Below are positions 8,764-24,183 of a stretch of DNA of 64,000 nucleotides, piece by piece. Location: the NCBI RefSeq assembly GCF_963853765.1, contig NC_088857.1, positions 38,812,001 to 38,876,000 of the forward strand. The letters are read 5' to 3'. A program made the position numbers and the translations under genes. The notes below the pieces were generated by a model that searched no databases, was not told where the DNA came from, and was given only the letters and a program-made list of their open reading frames with translations. Each line of letters starts with the position of its first letter. Within the stretch, counting starts at the first letter, position 1. The stretch comes from Magallana gigas (lineage: Eukaryota).

Positions 8764-9561
8764 ATGGCTGAGATCACCGATCTTGAAGAAATGGTACAAG
8801 ATTACGCCTGGAACATTCATGCAACGACCGGAAATGAAAGATTAGATTTAAAGGAGGCTCGTTTCGACATCAATTGGGCCAGGACGAAGTTCGTGTCATC
8901 GACTCCAGAGTTTGAAGCTATAGATAGCAACAGCTATGTCAAACAGAATCCGAAAGGAAAGTCTGCTGGAAGGTTTGGCGAAGAACCAAATGCCCAGGTG
9001 ATTTATCAATCCACGTACGTCAACAATACGAACGGAGATCATGAACAAAACATCTCCATGCAAAGGAGTACCAAGAGTATCTGCAAAGCTTTTGTTACGA
9101 AAGGCTATACCAAAGGAATCAACGTTGGTCTCAAACTGGCCGTGCCAGGCGACGTGGCTAACCTCACCACATCTTTTGGCTACTCTGTAAACTTGACCGA
9201 TAACTCGGAAGAATCAACTGAGGAAACCATGACCTGGGGGTCCGACTGCAAAGTGAAAGTTCCCAAGGGTCAAAGAATGTCTGCAAAAATCTCTGTCACG
9301 GAGAAAGAGTACAACGCAACCTTCCGAATGAAAACAAGTATCTATGGAACCGTCCATGTCGCTATTCATAGCAGAGCAGACGACAGGCTTATAAGGTCTA
9401 TCGACGCGCCCATTACGGAAATCATGAAATGGTATAGTCAGAAAAGAGGGTTTGGGTCCTGCAGTATCAAGGGAAACAAAGTGGAATGGGAGGTCACCGG
9501 TGAATGTTTCTTCAGGTTTGGAGTAGAGCAAACGGTTGAGATCCAGCCTGTAAGATCCTGA
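8764..9561 (+). CDS. Aerolysin-family (ETX/MTX2-like, LIN-24-like) beta-pore-forming protein, 265 aa, single coding exon
   Basis: Uninterrupted ORF with AAAA-ATG-G start. Family-like motifs: YQSTYVNNTNGDHEQ, an alternating amphipathic hairpin (GINVGLKLAVPGDVANLTTSFGYSVNL), Ser/Thr-rich SEESTEETMTW, KVKVP, and C-terminal VTGECFFRFGVEQTVEI. AATAAA at 9563-9568 and 9853-9858. No signal peptide is seen. Confidence 0.8.
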   Translation: MAEITDLEEMVQDYAWNIHATTGNERLDLKEARFDINWARTKFVSSTPEFEAIDSNSYVKQNPKGKSAGRFGEEPNAQVIYQSTYVNNTNGDHEQNISMQRSTKSICKAFVTKGYTKGINVGLKLAVPGDVANLTTSFGYSVNLTDNSEESTEETMTWGSDCKVKVPKGQRMSAKISVTEKEYNATFRMKTSIYGTVHVAIHSRADDRLIRSIDAPITEIMKWYSQKRGFGSCSIKGNKVEWEVTGECFFRFGVEQTVEIQPVRS

Positions 9562-11441: not shown

Positions 11442-14400
11442 TCAAGTCGAAATGTAGTCCATATTACAGACCACACCATTGCCTATATTGTCATCATTTG
11501 AGTTTGTTCTCTCCATTGCAATGTAGTCCTGGTTGTTGTGTGCCTCAACATGTACCTCGTTATTATTTTGATTATTTTCTTCTGTCGAAATACGAATTTT
11601 TCCATCGATTGAATCTATTCCTTCTGTTGAAATGTAGTCTAAATTATTGTCGACCTCACAAAATCTTTTGCTTGAATGTGTTCTCTCCGATTCAGTTGCA
11701 TACTCTGAAAACTGGTTCAGATCGTTTGCCGTGCAATAACTTGAGATGCTTTTTGTACTCAATCTTGCCCTTAGACTAAGCCCATCGTGGCAACAAGACG
11801 AATTATCTGACGCTGTTTCATGTGATATATTTTGGTTTAAGAACAATCTGGGAACAGCGCTTGTTGGTGTCAGTTCATTCGGTGACAAGTAACCCGGATC
11901 CGTTCCTGGATTTGAGCTATATTCAACTCCATCTGTATGTTGTTTGTCATCGATGACCATCGTATTAATGTTGGAGATGAGACTGAGTGGAGAGTTTGTA
12001 TTTTCAATATTAACGTTACCGTCGTAACCGTCCCTGTTTTGATCTGTGGAGGAGGTACTAGGTTGGTCTACAACAACACTGCAAACGTAGGAATCAATCT
12101 CCTGATGGGACACACTCGAAACTTCTGTACCGTCTGTGTGCTCATGGTCTTCTGAATTGATCGTCTGCATTGAGATCTGGTAAAAATTAGTTAAAATCAG
12201 AATTAGTCAAATAATTATAATGTCAGTAATTATATTATCATTACACCTTTTAGATATATAATAGATACTTACATTGTTGTTAACTACATATTGACACTTT
12301 TCTTTGATACATTTTCTCCTGTAAATGTATTAAATATAGTTCAATAAAATATATTTAAATGTACTATTACAAAGTGCCGGTGGTTTCCATTATGCGTGCG
12401 GGAAAAGAATTTATTTAAAGAAATCATGCATTTGAATTTGAAAATATAGGAAGAATTAATTCTTTATTTAGAAAATGACTGAGCAGATGTTTCAAGACTA
12501 TGATAACATTGACAGAAGAGATGTTTTAAAAAACGATCTTGTGTCCAAACCTTGAACATCCAAACATTAGGATAAACAGGATGACGATGCAAAAGGCACA
12601 GACAGCAGAAACAACAACAACAATAACACTTATATCTCCTGTGGTGGAAATATCATTAGAGTTGCTTTTTTCTACAAAAATAGATTTTTTGTTAGACATC
12701 AAGAGTTATTTTCAAGAGAATTATGTTGACAAAAATAGGATAACGGCAAAGATATATGAAGAGATTCAGACAAGTTGCACAAAACGAATCCTTAGAGTTG
12801 CATTGAAAAATGCAACGTGACATTTCCCCGTATTTGATGAAACATTGCTCAATGGAATTTTGAAAGAGCATAACGTTGTCGTAGATTTTTTCAAAAATAC
12901 TAATTTTAAAAGCTAGAATAAAAAGAGTTGTTAAGTCTTAAACAGGGTAGTTCATGTACAAGACCTAGTTGTGTTATGATTTAGGACAATGCAAATAGAA
13001 CAAAATCGAACACAATTTAGATAAAACAACCACAAGTATCAATCAAAATAGCGATGTCTTTCCAATTTTCTGTAATAGAGTTGCAAATTCAGTTTATACA
13101 TAACTATAGGTCGCCTCATTGCTATAATTCATGATTTGATGAATTCAGCTCCTAAATGTAAGTCAAAGCTTTGATAACAATTCTTTTGAAAAGACTTAAA
13201 GATATACATGTAGTTTTCTTATTACCATGTACAAAATTGGTATATATTAATTTACATGTCTTTCCCATTAAGGTGGAATAACACAACTGGAAAAAGCCAC
13301 TCAAATTAGCAAGAATTTTTTGATAATGAAAGATATAATGATAAATAAACTGTAAAAATGTCAAATAAGCAAAACATTTGCAGTTTGGGGATAAAAAATG
13401 AATATCTATAATAATTAATCCAGTAAAAAACAACAAAAGCCCCTGTGGGATTCGAACTCGGGATGTACGGATCACAAGTCCAACACTTTTTTTTTATCTT
13501 TTACAAGTCCGACACTTTATCCACTCGGCAATGGAGTAAGTTTTATGTTTCAGTCTATAAAATCCTTTTAATAAAACGAAATGTCGTTTCGATCAGCGGT
13601 CAGCCTTTTTGTGGTGATGTGTTATTTCACCTTAAGACTTTCTTTAAAATCAGGGAAATGAACATAAGAAAATAATAACAGTAGTACCTAAACACGTGTT
13701 CCAGTCTATGCCAGTGGTTTGGCCATTGGACCTGAACCCTAATCCTACATGCAAGCTGCCATTGTGGCTTCCACTGTTGATAGGTACTATAGCAGTTGAT
13801 TTGTTGAGAACTTCGTTGGACCACTGAATGAAATTCTAATAAAAAAAAATACATGTATTAATCGACAACTGTAAACAATGATTGTTTTTTTTTTTAATTT
13901 TTTACCTTTTATCTCTGTAAATCATGCAAAAGGGTGATCAAAGAACAAAGATTTAATTACTTCTGATAAACAAGAACTAAGTCAAAATATACCTCACACT
14001 CCACATGCGAGTCCCGTTTATATCCAACACACCAGAAAAGTGTAACCTCACAACTGTTACTTCCACCTGTGCTCTCTGACACGGGGTAGCCCTGTTCTGT
14101 TAATTTCAGGTTCACGTGGCTTCCATTCCCTTTAACCACTGAACAAACTATGCGATTGAAGCACCCTGTATTAAGAGGGTTAATTACTGCATTATAAACA
14201 TTGCCCTTTCTTTGCAATTTGTAAAAGTAACATGAAAAAGTCGTGATTTAATTAAAAAGAAACGGACACTTTTTATTAGCAGTCTTTTTATATGTAAGTC
14301 ATACCACAAGCATGGTCCATTGCTCGAAAGGACGTTGTCTGCGTTGTCATTCCATTGGTGGTCACTCCATAGACATTTATGTGGAATTGCTGACAGTTTC

Positions 14401-17400
14401 TAGTCTTATTTAAACGGATTGTAGCGATTGGCGAATAAGGAACTTCAAGCTCGAAAGATGTTTTCCTGTCTGATACATGTATCTTATACATCTTGATGAC
14501 ATTGCCGAGATCCTATAAAACATCACAAATGTTTTCATTTGACAATTAAAAAAAAACCATGTTGATGCCTTATTCAAACTGGCATGGTATTTCACAAAAT
14601 ATTTATCCATATTTTACCTTCCAGTACAAAATCAAACAGTAGAATCGCTCTTGACACGTGTACATTACGTAACCTTCTAGATCTGGACCAGCAAGCAGAC
14701 CACCAAGAGGAACTTTAATAACAAAGAACAGACACCCTTAACTACATGACATTGTAATATGTAATTATAAAGTAACTCATTACGTATGTCATTCTTTAAC
14801 AGTAATTAAGTTACCTTCAAAAGGCGTGGTAAGTGTTACAAGCTGTTCATCGCTCCAAACTTCTGACCCAATCACTGTACACTTTACAGCGATGGTATAG
14901 TCAGTCACTTGTTGTAGGTGATTTAGTTCCACCGTGTATAAAGTATCGTTGTTACAACTCTATTTTACAAAAAAATCTGTTTTAATAGTCTTCTGAAAAC
15001 ATGCGACCAAAGGACGTAAACAAAATAAATATCGGAAAGCAATGAAATAAGAATGGTCTGATAAGACTGTTTCATGTATAAGAAAACGGAGCACTTTTGA
15101 ATTTTTTCTCTCATGGTTACAAAATGTGGATAATTTTTTTAAAATCATAGACAGTTCTTATATCACATAAGAATCGTTAAAAACATATTCACCAAATAGT
15201 AGACTAAGTATTCACCTGGAACCACAATAAAGACAAAAATCCATTAAAGTTGTAAGAGTTCTAGTACATGTGAAATAATTGGTTGAATACCAGACTGAAA
15301 CTTACCCGCGTGATTATGACAGGAGAGCTCTGATTGGTTGTTACCTCACACTGTTTCATGCAATCACAGTTTCCGCTTACAGTTCCCAGAACTTCCCAAG
15401 CAAGGACCGGTCTTTTGCTCGAACTGTTTAGTCTTTGTACATTGGTTACGCGTAATTTTACTACAAAAACACACCAAAGAGAAATAGCACTGCTTGTTTT
15501 TAAAATAAATGTCAAATTAAATTATGTACATGTTTTTATTTTCAAAAACGAGTTTTCATTTACTCTGGACAAATCAAATAAAAATATACACTGTAGATCT
15601 CTAGTGTCTCAATAAATGTTAAAGTCATTCTAAAAAACATGAAATATTCAAAAGTATATTTACACGTATTGCATGATTAACTTATTCTTAATAACTGGCC
15701 ATTCATTTAACATGGCGAATAGTTAAATTCTAAGTATAAAGGACTATATATGATAAGGGCCTAAAATGGCCCCCTAAAATGAACATCATCATTTTACTAT
15801 CATTCTTTGTTTTCTTAGTACAGATATGTATGTGATGTGTTTACATAATATTCATTTTGGTTCAAGTGCCCACAATTTAGAAATATGACATTGTAAAGAC
15901 AACCTTTTCCCGCCATTTTTGCATTTTTAGCGTAAAACAGCTTGTTTTCAAACAGTTTTTCCTTCCGAAAACATAGAGCGCATTCTTGAACAAATAAAAT
16001 ATTTTAATAAGAGATGTATCTAGCCAAGACTAATAAGTGACAAAAAAATTTTCCTTGTTCATGCATGCGCTCTATGTTTCCCATTCGTAAATAGATAAGA
16101 AAAATGTCAATTTTTGGCTGATTTTGATTGAATTATAGAAATGGCGTCACTTCTGACGTCATATACTGACAGTGAGTGCACATAAATCAAATAAATAGAT
16201 GAAAAATATATTTTATATCAACTCTTCTAAAAAATTAGTTAACATTTTATTGTACCCGAAACACTTAAAAAATGACGAATTATGGGGGCCAAATTTAACT
16301 CTTATCATATATAGTTCTTTTTAAACAAACGTAACATAATCATTAATATACCATTCAAAGAGAGAATTGTACCTGATGAGCAATCAATGGTTTTATGAAT
16401 AATTCTGCTAGAAACTGAAGTTAACTTCCTTCCAGTTATTTTGAAATCTATCTGTTTTTGATCAAGGTTTGATCTTGGACATACTGCTTTCAACTTAACG
16501 TCAGAGCTATGCCTTGCTTGTACACAATTGGCTATAGGTGACAGTTCGGTACATGGGGTTGACACATTGCATGTGTGGTCAATAACGTAATAGCCGAGAT
16601 CTGAATTGACGCTGAAGAACAAAAAACAGAGAGAGAGAAACGTTAATCATATTATTTCTGGGGCATACAATTAGGGTACACCTTTAATTATATTTCAGCT
16701 GCTGAAATATCATAGGTTTACTCACATTGAAAAATCCCAACAGGTCGAATTTCTTCCGGTCCACTCGCAAATCAACGACTGATACAATTGATCATGATAA
16801 CATTGTACATCGTCCGGCAACACTACTTTTTCTGGTGAAGATAAAACAAGGAATAATTTTTTGTCAATTGTGTTTCTACAGTTTTGGATTTTTGTCATTT
16901 AAATTGACAATATATTATATTTTAAGTTTAGATATTGCACCATGGCAACGAAAGAAACATAAAGTTCCCAAATACATTTTGCAGTACACACCAATCTTAG
17001 GATAAATCTTTCAGGTGTGTTTTTTAAGGGGAGACAGTGTACGCATGTTGAAACTTTTTCCAGCGTTTGTTACTTTATGAGCAAACAATGAACAGATTTA
17101 TTTTGGATATAATCAGTAAATAAAAAAGATATGTTTTAATATTTACTGCTTACATAAGTTTTACTAAATAATACTACTAGTAGTTAAAAAATAATTACCT
17201 TCTATGTAAGTTATTTGCCTGTGATCTTTACCATCTTTTGCACAAAAATAAGTTCCAATGTTGTCTGGTATTTTGATGTCTTGAACTCGAGTTTCTATTG
17301 TATTCGAGTTTAGTTTTGTAGTATTGAGTTTATGAGCTTCACCCGGTTTGTCACGTGATTTGAACAGAAATTCAGCACCACTCGTATCGTTTCCACTAAA

Positions 17401-17652
17401 TATGCAACGGAGTACCAAGTTATCGTGTTCTTGGTAGCAAATGGTGGATGGATAAATCTCAATGTCTATAAAGAAAAAATTCAATTGGATTTTATGTATC
17501 GATGGTTCAAATAACAACTATCATGACTTTTGTTTACCATCGTATCAAAGTAAACTTAAAGATGATTTAATGAAACTATGCTCACCTAAGGAATGGAGAC
17601 TTGAGAGCGCCCCTATGGCAAGAAGAACAAACACACCTTGCATGATTTTCAT
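11442..17652 (-). CDS. Class I cytokine receptor-like protein (gp130/Domeless type): signal peptide, Ig-like domain, cytokine-binding module, 2 further FN3 domains, TM, Tyr-containing tail; about 820-830 aa, 13 coding exons
   Basis: GT-AG exons with consistent phases: 17652-17586 (MKIMQGVFVLLAIGALSSLHSLG), 17465-17199 (Ig: LVLRC...GTYFC), 16831-16726 (DVQCYHDQLYQSLICEW = C-x10-CxW), 16611-16373 (alt end 16352), 15460-15306, 14959-14815 (YTIAVKC...VWSDE), 14712-14618 (LILYWK), 14512-14305, 14186 (alt 14165)-13993 (VTLFWC), 13823-13688 (GIDWNTCL), 12638-12551 (TM ISVIVVVVSAVCAFCIVILFILMFGC), 12318-12273 (RKCIKEKC), 12176-11442 (cytoplasmic tail, ORF 11442-12170). Confidence 0.85.
13440..13535 (-). 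repeat. tRNA-derived (SINE-like) fragment in a receptor intron
   Basis: Minus strand has CGAGTTCGAATCCC (B-box/T-loop like) at ~13447-13460; no complete cloverleaf can be built. Confidence 0.35.
15740..16318. mobile_element. Non-autonomous TIR DNA transposon (probably TTAA-target, Kolobok-like) in intron 4 of the receptor
   Basis: Imperfect ~36-bp TIRs: AGGACTATATATGATAAGGGCCTAAAATGGCCCCC ... GGGGGCCAAATTTAACTCTTATCATATATAGTTCT; flanks resemble decayed TTAA. Confidence 0.7.
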
Positions 17653-18890
17653 GTTTATCATGCCTTTTACCGCTGCAAAATAACACAACGTTTTGTAAGC
17701 AATGGAAGAGAAGCGAACACTTATTTGATTTTTTATTGACAACTAAAATATGCTACTATCTACAAACAAGATTGATAACGATAGCCCTTGAAAAGACAGA
17801 AAACAATTATACTATGATGATGTTCTTTTTTTTTTACTTTTCGCCATTTACTTTAATAAAAGGCATTTGATTTTTATGATAACAAGAAAAAAAAAATAAC
17901 AAGAGCGATCGCCTTAACTATTAACTAAGAACATAAAAAGGTATACAAAGGTGCATTTATCACAAGCAAATATGTCGCCAAAAAATGGAGCATATACATT
18001 TTATTTGTAATTGCTATATCACTGTGAATCGTTATGTAAATCAGCGAATTTCATCACTTTTGGCCATTATGAAAATTCAATGGCGTTAGAAGTAGCTTCT
18101 TCCTGCAATGAATTCGGGCAAAGGGCTTCCAAACCAACTGTGATAAAAGCTCCTGAACTTTGACATCATTTTAGTGCAAACATCTTCACGTGTTTAAACA
18201 TACATCAAACGACTGTTAATCAAACAAACAAAAAGAGGGTGAAGGGGGTGGTTATAATCTAAACATAAGTACATAATGAATGTTTTTCAATGTAAAAATT
18301 AAGTGTAATTACCAGTTTAATCCGTTCGTTTTGTGTGCCTCTTGTTTCCCTTTATCTGTATTTGTTTATTTTAGATATCTTCCCAACACAGATTGCGTGT
18401 TGCTACAAGTGCGCCCTATATCTAGTATTCTAATGCTGTATAACAGCGGTGTAAACATCACTTTTTTGGATAAATATCTAAATGTACATTTGTAATTTGT
18501 AACATTTTGTTGGTTTTGGTTATCAATTATTTTGTTTTATCATCCGTTTGTCTACCCATATCTCTTCGTTTCATTTTTTTTCTTTGCAGCATGCACTTCT
18601 ATTAAAATTATCTTAAATGTGTTTGGCAACGATTTGCTTCAATTTTTTACTTTTCTAATTTTGATATCTACAACAATTACCCTAGGTATTTCAAACAGTC
18701 AGTCTTAATGCCAGTGCAGTTGTCAAACTTGTAAACGACAAATAGAGCTGGCAATTACGTATTTGTTATGTAAACAAGGCTTGTGCCATGTTTTTCTATT
18801 GTCATCTAGGTAAGTGGATAGAAAAATCGTTATTCTAAAACAAAATAAGGGGTTAAAAATTAGAAGCTCATACATTTTGTTAATACTTAA

Positions 18891-22758: not shown

Positions 22759-24183
22759 TCACGTAGCTGACTTCAGAGATTTCTCTTGTTCCGTCTTCCA
22801 AAACGAACGATATAGAGAAAAAACCTCTTCCCGAAATTTTACATCAAAGAAAAAATAAAATATGGGATTGGCCATATTATTGATATTGTACAACCGGAAA
22901 GCAATCAAATAGAAAGTAAGTTGCGATGACGTCATATTGTTTTCGTAATCAGGATTTGTGATATAAACAATAACTATGATGACATATGGAAAGAAACTTG
23001 CAATAAACAGCAATGTGATCGCCACGAGAACTTTCGTAATCTTCTTTTCCTTTCTCTCTACAGGAAACATTTTCTTCAGATTTTTCAGGTCGAATTCTCT
23101 CGGGTTTTTTACACCACATGTATCAGGAACAATTTCCGGTTGAGTGACTTTTCTATTAACGTTTTCTGCCAACTGGTTCGTTTCTTTTTGACCATCATTA
23201 TCGTGTTGGTTTATCCCGTTTACATTTCTCGATCCAAGCTTTTGATCTCTGACGTTACTAACATCTGCTTGTTTCTTTTCGATATCAACTGTTTTTGTTT
23301 CACTTTTAAAAAAGTTTTTCTTTGGAATTCTCTTGAACAAACTTTTACTGATATCATCTTGTTGTCGTGTATTGGGATCGGGTAATTCTTCGCAGCTGTG
23401 AGATAGACGAGAAACATGTTTAGGCTGTGAGGAAAATTTATGTTTAAAGAGGTCAGAAGATGAACAGAAAGAACGATTTAGTTTCACTGAATCGCAATGA
23501 TTTTTATCAAGTCTTGCTCTTATCCTACGCTCGTGTCTCTTTAGGCTATAACCAATAATAGCGTATATAACAGAGAGAGAAATCATGCAGACTATGATGA
23601 GGAGAGTTAGGAAGCCAGCGTACGCGTATCCAAAGAGAGGACGATCCTTCATGTGATCACCCCATGTGCATTCCTTCCCCGTTTGTACTTCATTAAGTTC
23701 AATTGTTTTCGTACCATATATATAGAGTACTGGGAGAGACACCACAACTGTCGAAATAATAACAATTACGACATATTTCTTGGCTCGTATTTCAGTCATC
23801 TGAATTCCATAAGGCTTGCAGATTTTTCGGTAGCGTTCTGAAGCTATAAGCACTAATGTGAAAGCACATGACAACGCTACACAAAAATTCACAAACCGGA
23901 ATATCTTGCAGGACATGGTATCACTGTAACTATAAGGCAGGGACTCGTCCACAATTTCAAATGGCATTGACACACAACATCCAATCAAATCTATGACAGC
24001 CAGTGACAACACGAAACACCGGTAAGTTGTCTTTTTAAAACGCGCATAATACAGAAACAACACATGGCAATTTCCTATTATACCAAGAATGGCAATCACT
24101 CCAATAAAGACTCGAACCGGGATTCTGGTTATCAAAGCCTCTGAAGTAAGTTCATCAATAGTTTTGTTCGATTCGGAATTCAT
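22759..24183 (-). CDS. Orphan rhodopsin-class (class A) GPCR, peptide-receptor-like, single coding exon, 474 aa
   Basis: Seven hydrophobic segments; TM1 GIIGN, TM2 LAVID, TM3 ERY, TM6 FIASFFP, TM7 NNMANPIFY, helix 8 FDVKFR; long hydrophilic third intracellular loop. Confidence 0.92.
   Translation of the reverse strand: MNSESNKTIDELTSEALITRIPVRVFIGVIAILGIIGNCHVLFLYYARFKKTTYRCFVLSLAVIDLIGCCVSMPFEIVDESLPYSYSDTMSCKIFRFVNFCVALSCAFTLVLIASERYRKICKPYGIQMTEIRAKKYVVIVIISTVVVSLPVLYIYGTKTIELNEVQTGKECTWGDHMKDRPLFGYAYAGFLTLLIIVCMISLSVIYAIIGYSLKRHERRIRARLDKNHCDSVKLNRSFCSSSDLFKHKFSSQPKHVSRLSHSCEELPDPNTRQQDDISKSLFKRIPKKNFFKSETKTVDIEKKQADVSNVRDQKLGSRNVNGINQHDNDGQKETNQLAENVNRKVTQPEIVPDTCGVKNPREFDLKNLKKMFPVERKEKKITKVLVAITLLFIASFFPYVIIVIVYITNPDYENNMTSSQLTFYLIAFRLYNINNMANPIFYFFFDVKFREEVFSLYRSFWKTEQEKSLKSAT

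Follow-up and report, generated by a model that had tools for sequence, protein, structure and literature searches.

Does the genome of the oyster Magallana gigas encode a cytokine receptor of the gp130/Domeless type, and would such a receptor signal in the canonical way? The question is raised by a minus-strand gene in a 64,000-nucleotide stretch of contig NC_088857.1 (positions 38,812,001 to 38,876,000 of the forward strand), called here the window, to which all coordinates refer. An initial annotation, made from the sequence, had joined 13 exons between 11442 and 17652 into a class I cytokine receptor. To our knowledge, little is established in molluscs about the receptors and ligands that act upstream of JAK/STAT, and a literature search found no paper on this oyster gene. 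The gene is real and expressed, and the third domain of the encoded protein is specifically like the membrane-proximal domain of the cytokine-binding module (CBM) of IL-31RA and LIFR. The ectodomain probably works like, and derives from, a gp130-type ectodomain. The receptor should not be classed among the canonical class I signalling receptors, because its WSXWS motif is half present, Box1, Box2 and YxxQ are absent, and its cysteine signature is one residue off.

Gene structure and expression

The 13 coding exons join in phase into a single 834-aa frame with one terminal stop, and GT and AG delimit all 12 coding introns, as the initial annotation had proposed. RNA contigs from three runs of three different studies (X4, X8 and X12) and raw poly-A reads were mapped on 11660-17659. 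All 12 junctions were recovered at the exact predicted base, read as CT..AC on the plus strand (Table 1). One stranded raw read (X21) backs the junctions too, and first mates of X21 lie over the exons on the plus strand only, which fits RNA transcribed from the minus strand. Between 0.38 and 0.53 of the sampled words of the 6.2-kb stretch are present in the RNA runs, the coding-exon share being 0.40, and the expression level is low in the runs examined. A spliced transcript contig of 1,724 nt from a sister species (L019, 90% nucleotide identity) has the same junctions.

The gene is larger than was first drawn. The protein start had been placed at 17652; the first in-frame ATG past the exon-1 acceptor lies 9 nt upstream, at 17661 (MINMKIM...), and the sister-species open reading frame (ORF) starts at the same ATG. 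An AG acceptor precedes 17672, where coding exon 1 begins. Further upstream is a non-coding 5' exon whose last base is 18313, followed by a GT donor, as seen in L019 and in the donor sequence. Because of this 5' untranslated region (UTR) exon at 18313-18342 and the exon-1 start at 17672, the gene has at least 14 exons and reaches beyond 11442-17652.

Domain architecture of the ectodomain

Pfam, AlphaFold2 (AF2) and protein searches were run on P0010, an ORF derived from a sister-species transcript, and on the protein of Saccostrea cucullata (P0007, gene L007) in place of the joined window protein, to which P0010 is 88% identical over 482 residues. Direct reading of the sequence gives a signal peptide, 26 ectodomain cysteines, 11 N-x-S/T sites, one transmembrane helix (aa 548-572) and a 260-aa tail. 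The protein is composed of the signal peptide, an immunoglobulin (Ig)-like domain (D1), a two-domain module (D2-D3), two legs resembling fibronectin type III (FN3) domains (D4-D5), the transmembrane helix and the tail. This is the topology of gp130 and Domeless, and the initial annotation had assigned the same order of parts; profiles, predicted structures and hydropathy back it, each single line of evidence being weak.

The Pfam model Ig_3 matches D1 with E-values of 0.011-0.017, below the cut-off, and is also the only match, again sub-threshold, of single window exons. A D1 profile compared with the Protein Data Bank (PDB) finds the T-cell receptor (TCR) V-alpha domain across the whole domain (E 0.013). 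A D2-D3 profile built from four oyster lineages was compared with 177,635 PDB sequences, and its top five matches are IL-31RA (E 0.0014 and 0.0017) and LIFR (0.017, 0.19 and 0.23). The same five entries are found with a separately built D3-only profile, with E-values of 0.0015-0.03 (IL-31RA 0.0015, LIFR 0.02). In the profile alignment, Y-T-I-A-V-K-C...V-W-S-D-E of the oyster D3 lies over Y-V-I-A-L-R-C...F-W-S-D-W-S of IL-31RA, and at the start of the CBM P-D-D-V-Q-C-x10-C-E-W lies over P-E-N-I-S-C...C-T-W. The D4 profile matches an FN3 domain of fibronectin (E 0.09), and D4 shows the canonical W, Y and Y-x-V pattern. Profiles alone helped: a phmmer search of the PDB with the Saccostrea ectodomain returned nothing useful.

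Predicted structures point the same way. The ten neighbour families of the ESM Atlas ESMFold model of P0007 residues 112-336 (D2-D3) are all cytokine receptors, with TM-scores of 0.57-0.67; they include a gp130 homologue (0.67), OSMR (0.65) and IL-31RA (0.63), and also IL-6R, IL2RG, IL13RA1 and EpoR. For residues 329-532 (D4-D5), nine of ten neighbours are tall cytokine receptors (TM-score 0.55-0.76). The first AF2 model was set aside (confidence score pLDDT 44); in the second, D3 alone is confident, with a pLDDT of 65-86 and seven strands. D3 has the FN3 fold (VIA Z 9-10, root-mean-square deviation 2.4-3.5 Å over 87-105 residues), and its VIA matches include TSLPR, the IL-27 complex, LEPR and PRLR, with Robo ranking level with the cytokine-receptor domains. 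In Foldseek searches with the second AF2 model, about 45 of the top 50 PDB matches and 29 of the top 30 Swiss-Prot matches are cytokine-receptor CBMs, among them EpoR, EBI3, IL-31RA, gp130 (1bqu), LIFR, gamma-c and TpoR (E 6e-6 to 1e-4). We take these lists as support, not proof, for a likeness to CBMs.

Class I hallmarks

Criteria for class I cytokine receptors were taken from Liongue & Ward 2007 (PMC1963337), where the signature of the first fold is C-x(9-10)-C-x-W-x(26-32)-C-x(10-15)-C. The pattern observed in D2 is C122-x10-C133-x-W135-x25-C161-x14-C176, and its spacing is identical in the window protein, P0010 and P0007. In the cytokine receptor homology domain the second, C-terminal fold is of FN3 type, and D3 provides it according to AF2, VIA and the profile. 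The WSXWS motif reads WSDEQ in the window protein and P0010, WSDDV in Saccostrea and WSNRE in a third lineage (L006, which has exons 3-6). The first W-S alone is kept, and it sits at the aligned WSXWS position of IL-31RA and LIFR. The strings C-x10-C-x-W, VWSDE, TLFWC and GIDWNTC, which the initial annotation had offered as hallmarks, occur in the window and are retained by the orthologue in Saccostrea. Of these, TLFWC and GIDWNTC belong to the conserved residues of the family and are not hallmarks of cytokine receptors.

Several observations weigh against a cytokine-receptor identity. The Pfam models fn3, IL6Ra-bind and Lep_receptor_Ig have zero matches in P0010 and P0007 up to an E-value of 10, both for the entire proteins and for their separate domains. 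The E-values near 1e-3 for IL-31RA are borderline. The evidence from sequence comes from D3 only, and the D2-only profile returned noise from the PDB; what speaks for D2 is the motif at its N-terminus, the spacing of its cysteines and the structure predictions. The pLDDT of D2 is below 50 in both AF2 models, and the Foldseek TM-scores are only about 0.3, on a low-confidence model. The W-to-Cys spacer in D2 is one residue short of the 26-32 of the signature, and four further conserved cysteines, eight in total, speak against full class I membership. Half of WSXWS is missing. The cytoplasmic parts of the window protein and P0007 contain no P-x-x-P-x-P or hydrophobic-P-x-x-P that could stand for Box1 or Box2. 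A cytoplasmic YxxQ is absent in both genera, every YxxQ match being extracellular. The initial annotation had staked its reading on RNA support for the junctions, which was found, and on an FN3 or cytokine-receptor domain match, which is absent at the Pfam level. Its assignment to the gp130/Domeless-like class I receptors stands for the likeness to the gp130 family in profiles and structural neighbours, and fails for the complete WSXWS, Box1 and YxxQ.

Cytoplasmic tail

The tail carries three N-x-D-Y-I motifs, at 11625-11645, 11514-11534 and 11445-11465, the last of which forms the C-terminus. The motifs are kept in four oyster sequences; Crassostrea-type sequences have all three as N-x-D-Y-I, and Saccostrea has them as DY[IV]. 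The Saccostrea tail is about 50 aa longer, and its DY[IV] motifs are kept but partly shifted. Compared with the ectodomain, the tail evolves fast, with 23% against 40-60% identity to Saccostrea. The juxtamembrane region is not conserved, at 12-31% identity between the window and Saccostrea over exons 11-12. Since neither Box1 nor a cytoplasmic YxxQ can be read from the tail, JAK/STAT signalling of the gp130/Domeless type is not indicated. Adaptors with SH2 or PTB domains (NxxY-type) may bind the NxDY[IV] motifs.

Conservation and copy number

The sole full-length relative among 5.8 billion proteins is the uncharacterized S. cucullata protein LOC134269710 (P0007, 885 aa). Full-length searches of this set returned the Saccostrea protein and one Logan transcript ORF only, and they found no full-length model from the window's own species. 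Neither these searches nor a search of representatives found relatives outside oysters. As a handle on cytokine signalling in lophotrochozoans at large, a use that the initial annotation had put forward, the gene is thus weak. P0006 and P0009, returned by the exon-4 search of representatives, were rejected as spurious repeat proteins whose scores are summed over 8-12 stretches and which contain bacterial Ig-like or SUMO-like repeats.

P0007 is collinear with the window protein, with zero indels at the ectodomain junctions, and the introns of L007 are at protein positions identical to those of the window gene. Identity to P0007 is 44-49% overall in the ectodomain (span 40-60%) and about 23% in the tail. 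The order of a seven-transmembrane (7TM) receptor gene, the cytokine-receptor-like gene and an aerolysin-like gene is common to the window and Saccostrea, and LOC134269710 is a positional orthologue. In comparison with the sister-species transcript, the nonsynonymous and synonymous divergences (dN and dS) are 0.057 and 0.239 over 481 codons. The dN/dS of 0.24, alike in all domains, points to purifying selection on the receptor.

A family profile run against the window's own genome matches these exons only, and a search of that genome with exon 4 finds exon 4 itself as the sole match. The gene is therefore single-copy, without a detectable paralogue, and its earlier description as a divergent paralogue is unproven. 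Scans of the same genome with IL6Ra-bind and Lep_receptor_Ig gave no match; the controls were silent too, and the scans are uninformative on a canonical receptor.

Comparison with known receptors

Like the tall receptors of the vertebrate gp130 family (IL-31RA, LIFR, gp130, OSMR, G-CSFR and LEPR), the oyster protein has type I topology and combines an Ig-like domain with a module of two domains and with FN3 legs. Its D2 likewise opens with P-x4-C-x10-C-x-W, and D3 shares with the CBM C-domain of IL-31RA and LIFR the pattern Y-x-[IV]-x-[IV]-[KR]-C followed by WSD. The vertebrate receptors differ in having a complete WSXWS instead of WS-D only, four D2 cysteines instead of eight, three leg domains instead of two, and a Lep_receptor_Ig domain in place of the V/I-set-like D1. 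Unlike them, the oyster protein lacks Box1, Box2 and YxxQ and is recognized by no Pfam model.

Domeless of Drosophila, which is very diverged from the vertebrate receptors, is also an invertebrate receptor with a CBM and FN3 repeats. Its topology is Ig-CHD-FBN-TM-Box1 (PMC1963337). Domeless signals through Hopscotch and STAT92E, whereas the oyster protein has neither Box1 nor YxxQ. No similarity to arthropod receptors was recovered in any sequence search made of the oyster protein.

The molluscan 'IL6R' homologues described by Yu et al. 2026 have a signal peptide, an Ig domain, an IL6R domain, FN3 domains, a transmembrane segment and a tail (PMC13203501). Compared by description, they are recognizable by SMART domain models, whereas the oyster protein is not recognized by Pfam. 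As such domain-recognizable proteins exist, a canonical receptor is probably encoded elsewhere. A gp130-family-like ectodomain that standard domain models miss also means that surveys based on Pfam or SMART undercount such receptors.

Proposed function and alternative explanations

We favor, as a fairly probable explanation, a diverged receptor of the cytokine-receptor fold that would bind a secreted protein at the elbow between D2 and D3 and would signal by way of either its tail tyrosines or a partner chain. The likeness of fold is observed; we infer the remainder. An expressed single-copy gene, so far found in oysters only, would give rise to a type I membrane receptor that is glycosylated and 834-837 aa long. 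The ectodomain would be a strongly diverged derivative of the tall class I design of the gp130 family, with the Ig-like domain, the D2-D3 module and two FN3-like legs. The secreted protein ligand would be held at the D2-D3 elbow, as in class I receptors. With no Box1 and no YxxQ in the tail, JAK and STAT would not be recruited in the canonical way. Instead, the three NxDY[IV] tyrosines might be phosphorylated and recruit SH2 or PTB adaptors, or the protein might be a chain that partners or modulates another receptor. The gene is lineage-restricted and little expressed in the runs examined, and its function is a prediction. The three NxDY[IV] motifs in place of Box1 and YxxQ nonetheless offer a mutable handle on signalling by a cytokine-receptor fold without canonical JAK docking.

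A generic, oyster-specific cell-surface recognition or adhesion receptor of the Ig superfamily with FN3 domains, related to cytokine receptors neither by descent nor by function, in which the D3 likeness and C-x10-C-x-W arose by chance or by convergence within the FN3 superfamily, is rather unlikely. Many lineage-specific surface receptor families are present in oysters, and this family is known from oysters only. The Pfam results for fn3 and cytokine-receptor models, the silent D2-only profile, the level ranking of Robo and other non-cytokine FN3 domains with cytokine receptors for D3 (VIA Z 9-10), and the absence of Box1, YxxQ and a complete WSXWS count for it too. However, CBM domains of the gp130 family are the sole above-noise matches among FN3-bearing PDB sequences in two separate profiles, and W-S stands exactly at the WSXWS position. 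Moreover, two structure predictors give cytokine-receptor CBMs and not the abundant tandems of titin, contactin or fibronectin.

It is unlikely, if worth stating as a variant of the favored explanation, that the receptor has lost its JAK/STAT docking motifs and signals by a lineage-specific NxDY[IV] phosphotyrosine module. Such a receptor may receive putative IL-6-like helical proteins, alone or as one chain of a complex. If the pairing with a putative IL-6-like oyster protein is true, the two would be the first such pair of ligand and receptor from any lophotrochozoan.

Slightly less likely again is a non-signalling modulator resembling Drosophila Latran (Eye transformer, CG14225), which has a CBM-type ectodomain and no consensus STAT-docking site (PMC2914635). 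The oyster protein would then pair with a canonical Dome- or gp130-like receptor or sequester its ligand, and so dampen JAK/STAT signalling. As in Latran, a consensus STAT site and motifs for JAK docking are missing from it, and retention of intron 11, seen in one X12 contig, would yield a tail-less form that ends 9 residues past the transmembrane segment. In contrast to Latran, a tandem duplicate of dome that has a short tail and lacks FN3 legs, the oyster protein has two legs and a tail of about 260 aa, and no second receptor copy was found in the window or the genome. The tail is constrained and keeps its three tyrosine motifs between genera, which argues for a role in signalling or trafficking.

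A canonical JAK/STAT cytokine receptor, with a cryptic non-proline JAK site at the membrane and STAT docked on the DY[IV] tyrosines, is highly improbable: the gp130-type ectodomain likeness, the conserved tail tyrosines and the presence of JAK and STAT in molluscs (PMC13203501) speak for it, but a Box1/Box2-like proline motif and YxxQ are absent in both genera and the juxtamembrane region is unconserved between the window and Saccostrea.

Exon coordinates and splice variants

Table 1 Exons of the receptor gene in the window, with the junctions recovered in RNA
Feature	Position	Strand	RNA junction with next coding exon	Evidence
5'-UTR exon, 3' part	18313..18342	-		L019 nt 1-30 match 18342-18313, then jump to 17671; GT donor after 18313
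Coding exon 1, signal peptide	17586..17672	-	17465/17586	AG before 17672; ATG 17661; junction in X4, X8 and X12 contigs
Exon 2, Ig-like domain (Cys43...Cys97, D-x-G-x-Y-x-C)	17199..17465	-	16831/17199	Ig_3 below cut-off; TCR V-alpha profile match; RNA junctions
Exon 3, start of domain 2, C-x10-C-x-W at 16761-16802	16726..16831	-	16611/16726	HMMER alignment to P..l.C...l.C.W of IL-31RA/LIFR; RNA junctions
Exon 4, remainder of domain 2 (8 cysteines in domain, all kept in Saccostrea)	16373..16611	-	15460/16373	RNA junctions
Exon 5, first half of domain 3 (FN3 fold)	15306..15460	-	14959/15306	AF2 pLDDT 65-86; VIA Z 9-10; RNA junctions
Exon 6, second half of domain 3, Y-x-I-x-V-K-C then VWSDE (14846-14860)	14815..14959	-	14712/14815	HMMER alignment to IL-31RA and LIFR
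Exon 7, first part of domain 4 (FN3-like)	14618..14712	-	14512/14618	RNA junctions; fibronectin FN3 profile match, E 0.09
Exon 8, remainder of domain 4	14305..14512	-	14165/14305	RNA junctions; fibronectin FN3 profile match
Exon 9, first half of domain 5, contains TLFWC	13993..14165	-	13835/13993	Junction 14165/14305 in X4 and X8; length as in Saccostrea; ESM Atlas neighbours of D4-D5
Exon 10, second half of domain 5, ends GIDWNTCL	13688..13835	-	12671/13688	RNA junctions; Saccostrea alignment
Exon 11, stalk and transmembrane helix (12559-12633), weak donor GTTTGG	12551..12671	-	12318/12551	Hydropathy maximum aa 548-572; RNA junctions
Exon 12, basic juxtamembrane stretch without proline-rich Box1	12273..12318	-	12176/12273	RNA junctions
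Exon 13, coding part, S/N/D/T/E-rich tail, stop 11442-11444	11442..12176	-		Joined frame; motif reading

An in-phase alternative acceptor of exon 9, 21 nt upstream of 14165, was ruled out by the RNA junctions and the length of the orthologue. Intron 11 (12319-12550), which has the weak donor GTTTGG, is retained in one otherwise partly spliced X12 contig (record 1). Its read-through reaches a stop 9 codons past the transmembrane exon and would give a tail-less membrane form; the contig represents either an isoform or unprocessed RNA. The sister-species transcript L019 uses an exon-10 acceptor 10 nt upstream (window 13836-13845), so that the frame shifts and the ORF is cut short, and an exon-7 acceptor 9 nt downstream (window 14705-14712), with the loss of 3 aa in frame. 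These variant acceptors possibly reflect alternative or non-productive splicing. ARAGORN found no tRNA in the gene region.

Neighbouring genes

The 7TM receptor gene, located at 22774-24171 on the minus strand, is intronless and is found in both genera on the upstream side of the receptor gene. It is 61% identical to its Saccostrea counterpart, and its 7TM assignment comes from a Pfam 7tm_1 match in the Saccostrea neighbour. The aerolysin-like stretch at 8986-9548 (minus strand) has 74% DNA identity to L007 21033-21597. It lies at the same place downstream of the receptor in both, and its position is thus conserved. About 8 kb downstream of the Saccostrea receptor, L007 26909-27373 is 57% identical to the last 150 residues of the receptor tail. 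It is a partial tandem copy of the Saccostrea tail and has no counterpart in the window.

Repeats within introns

Two introns contain repeats of high RNA depth. The repeat in intron 10 (13260-13659) has a contig word depth of 400-2,000, compared with about 20 on the exons, and internal joints of its own in X12; ARAGORN found no tRNA there. Intron 4 harbors a 589-bp element (15735-16323) resembling a miniature inverted-repeat transposable element (MITE), with 40-nt terminal inverted repeats that are 80% complementary. On both strands its RNA depth exceeds that of the exons by a factor of tens to thousands, and loose read ends stack exactly at 15738 and 16320. The depth and the loose ends indicate that many copies are transcribed elsewhere. 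The Saccostrea orthologue has a related copy of this MITE-like element in another of its introns (L007 12845-13308).

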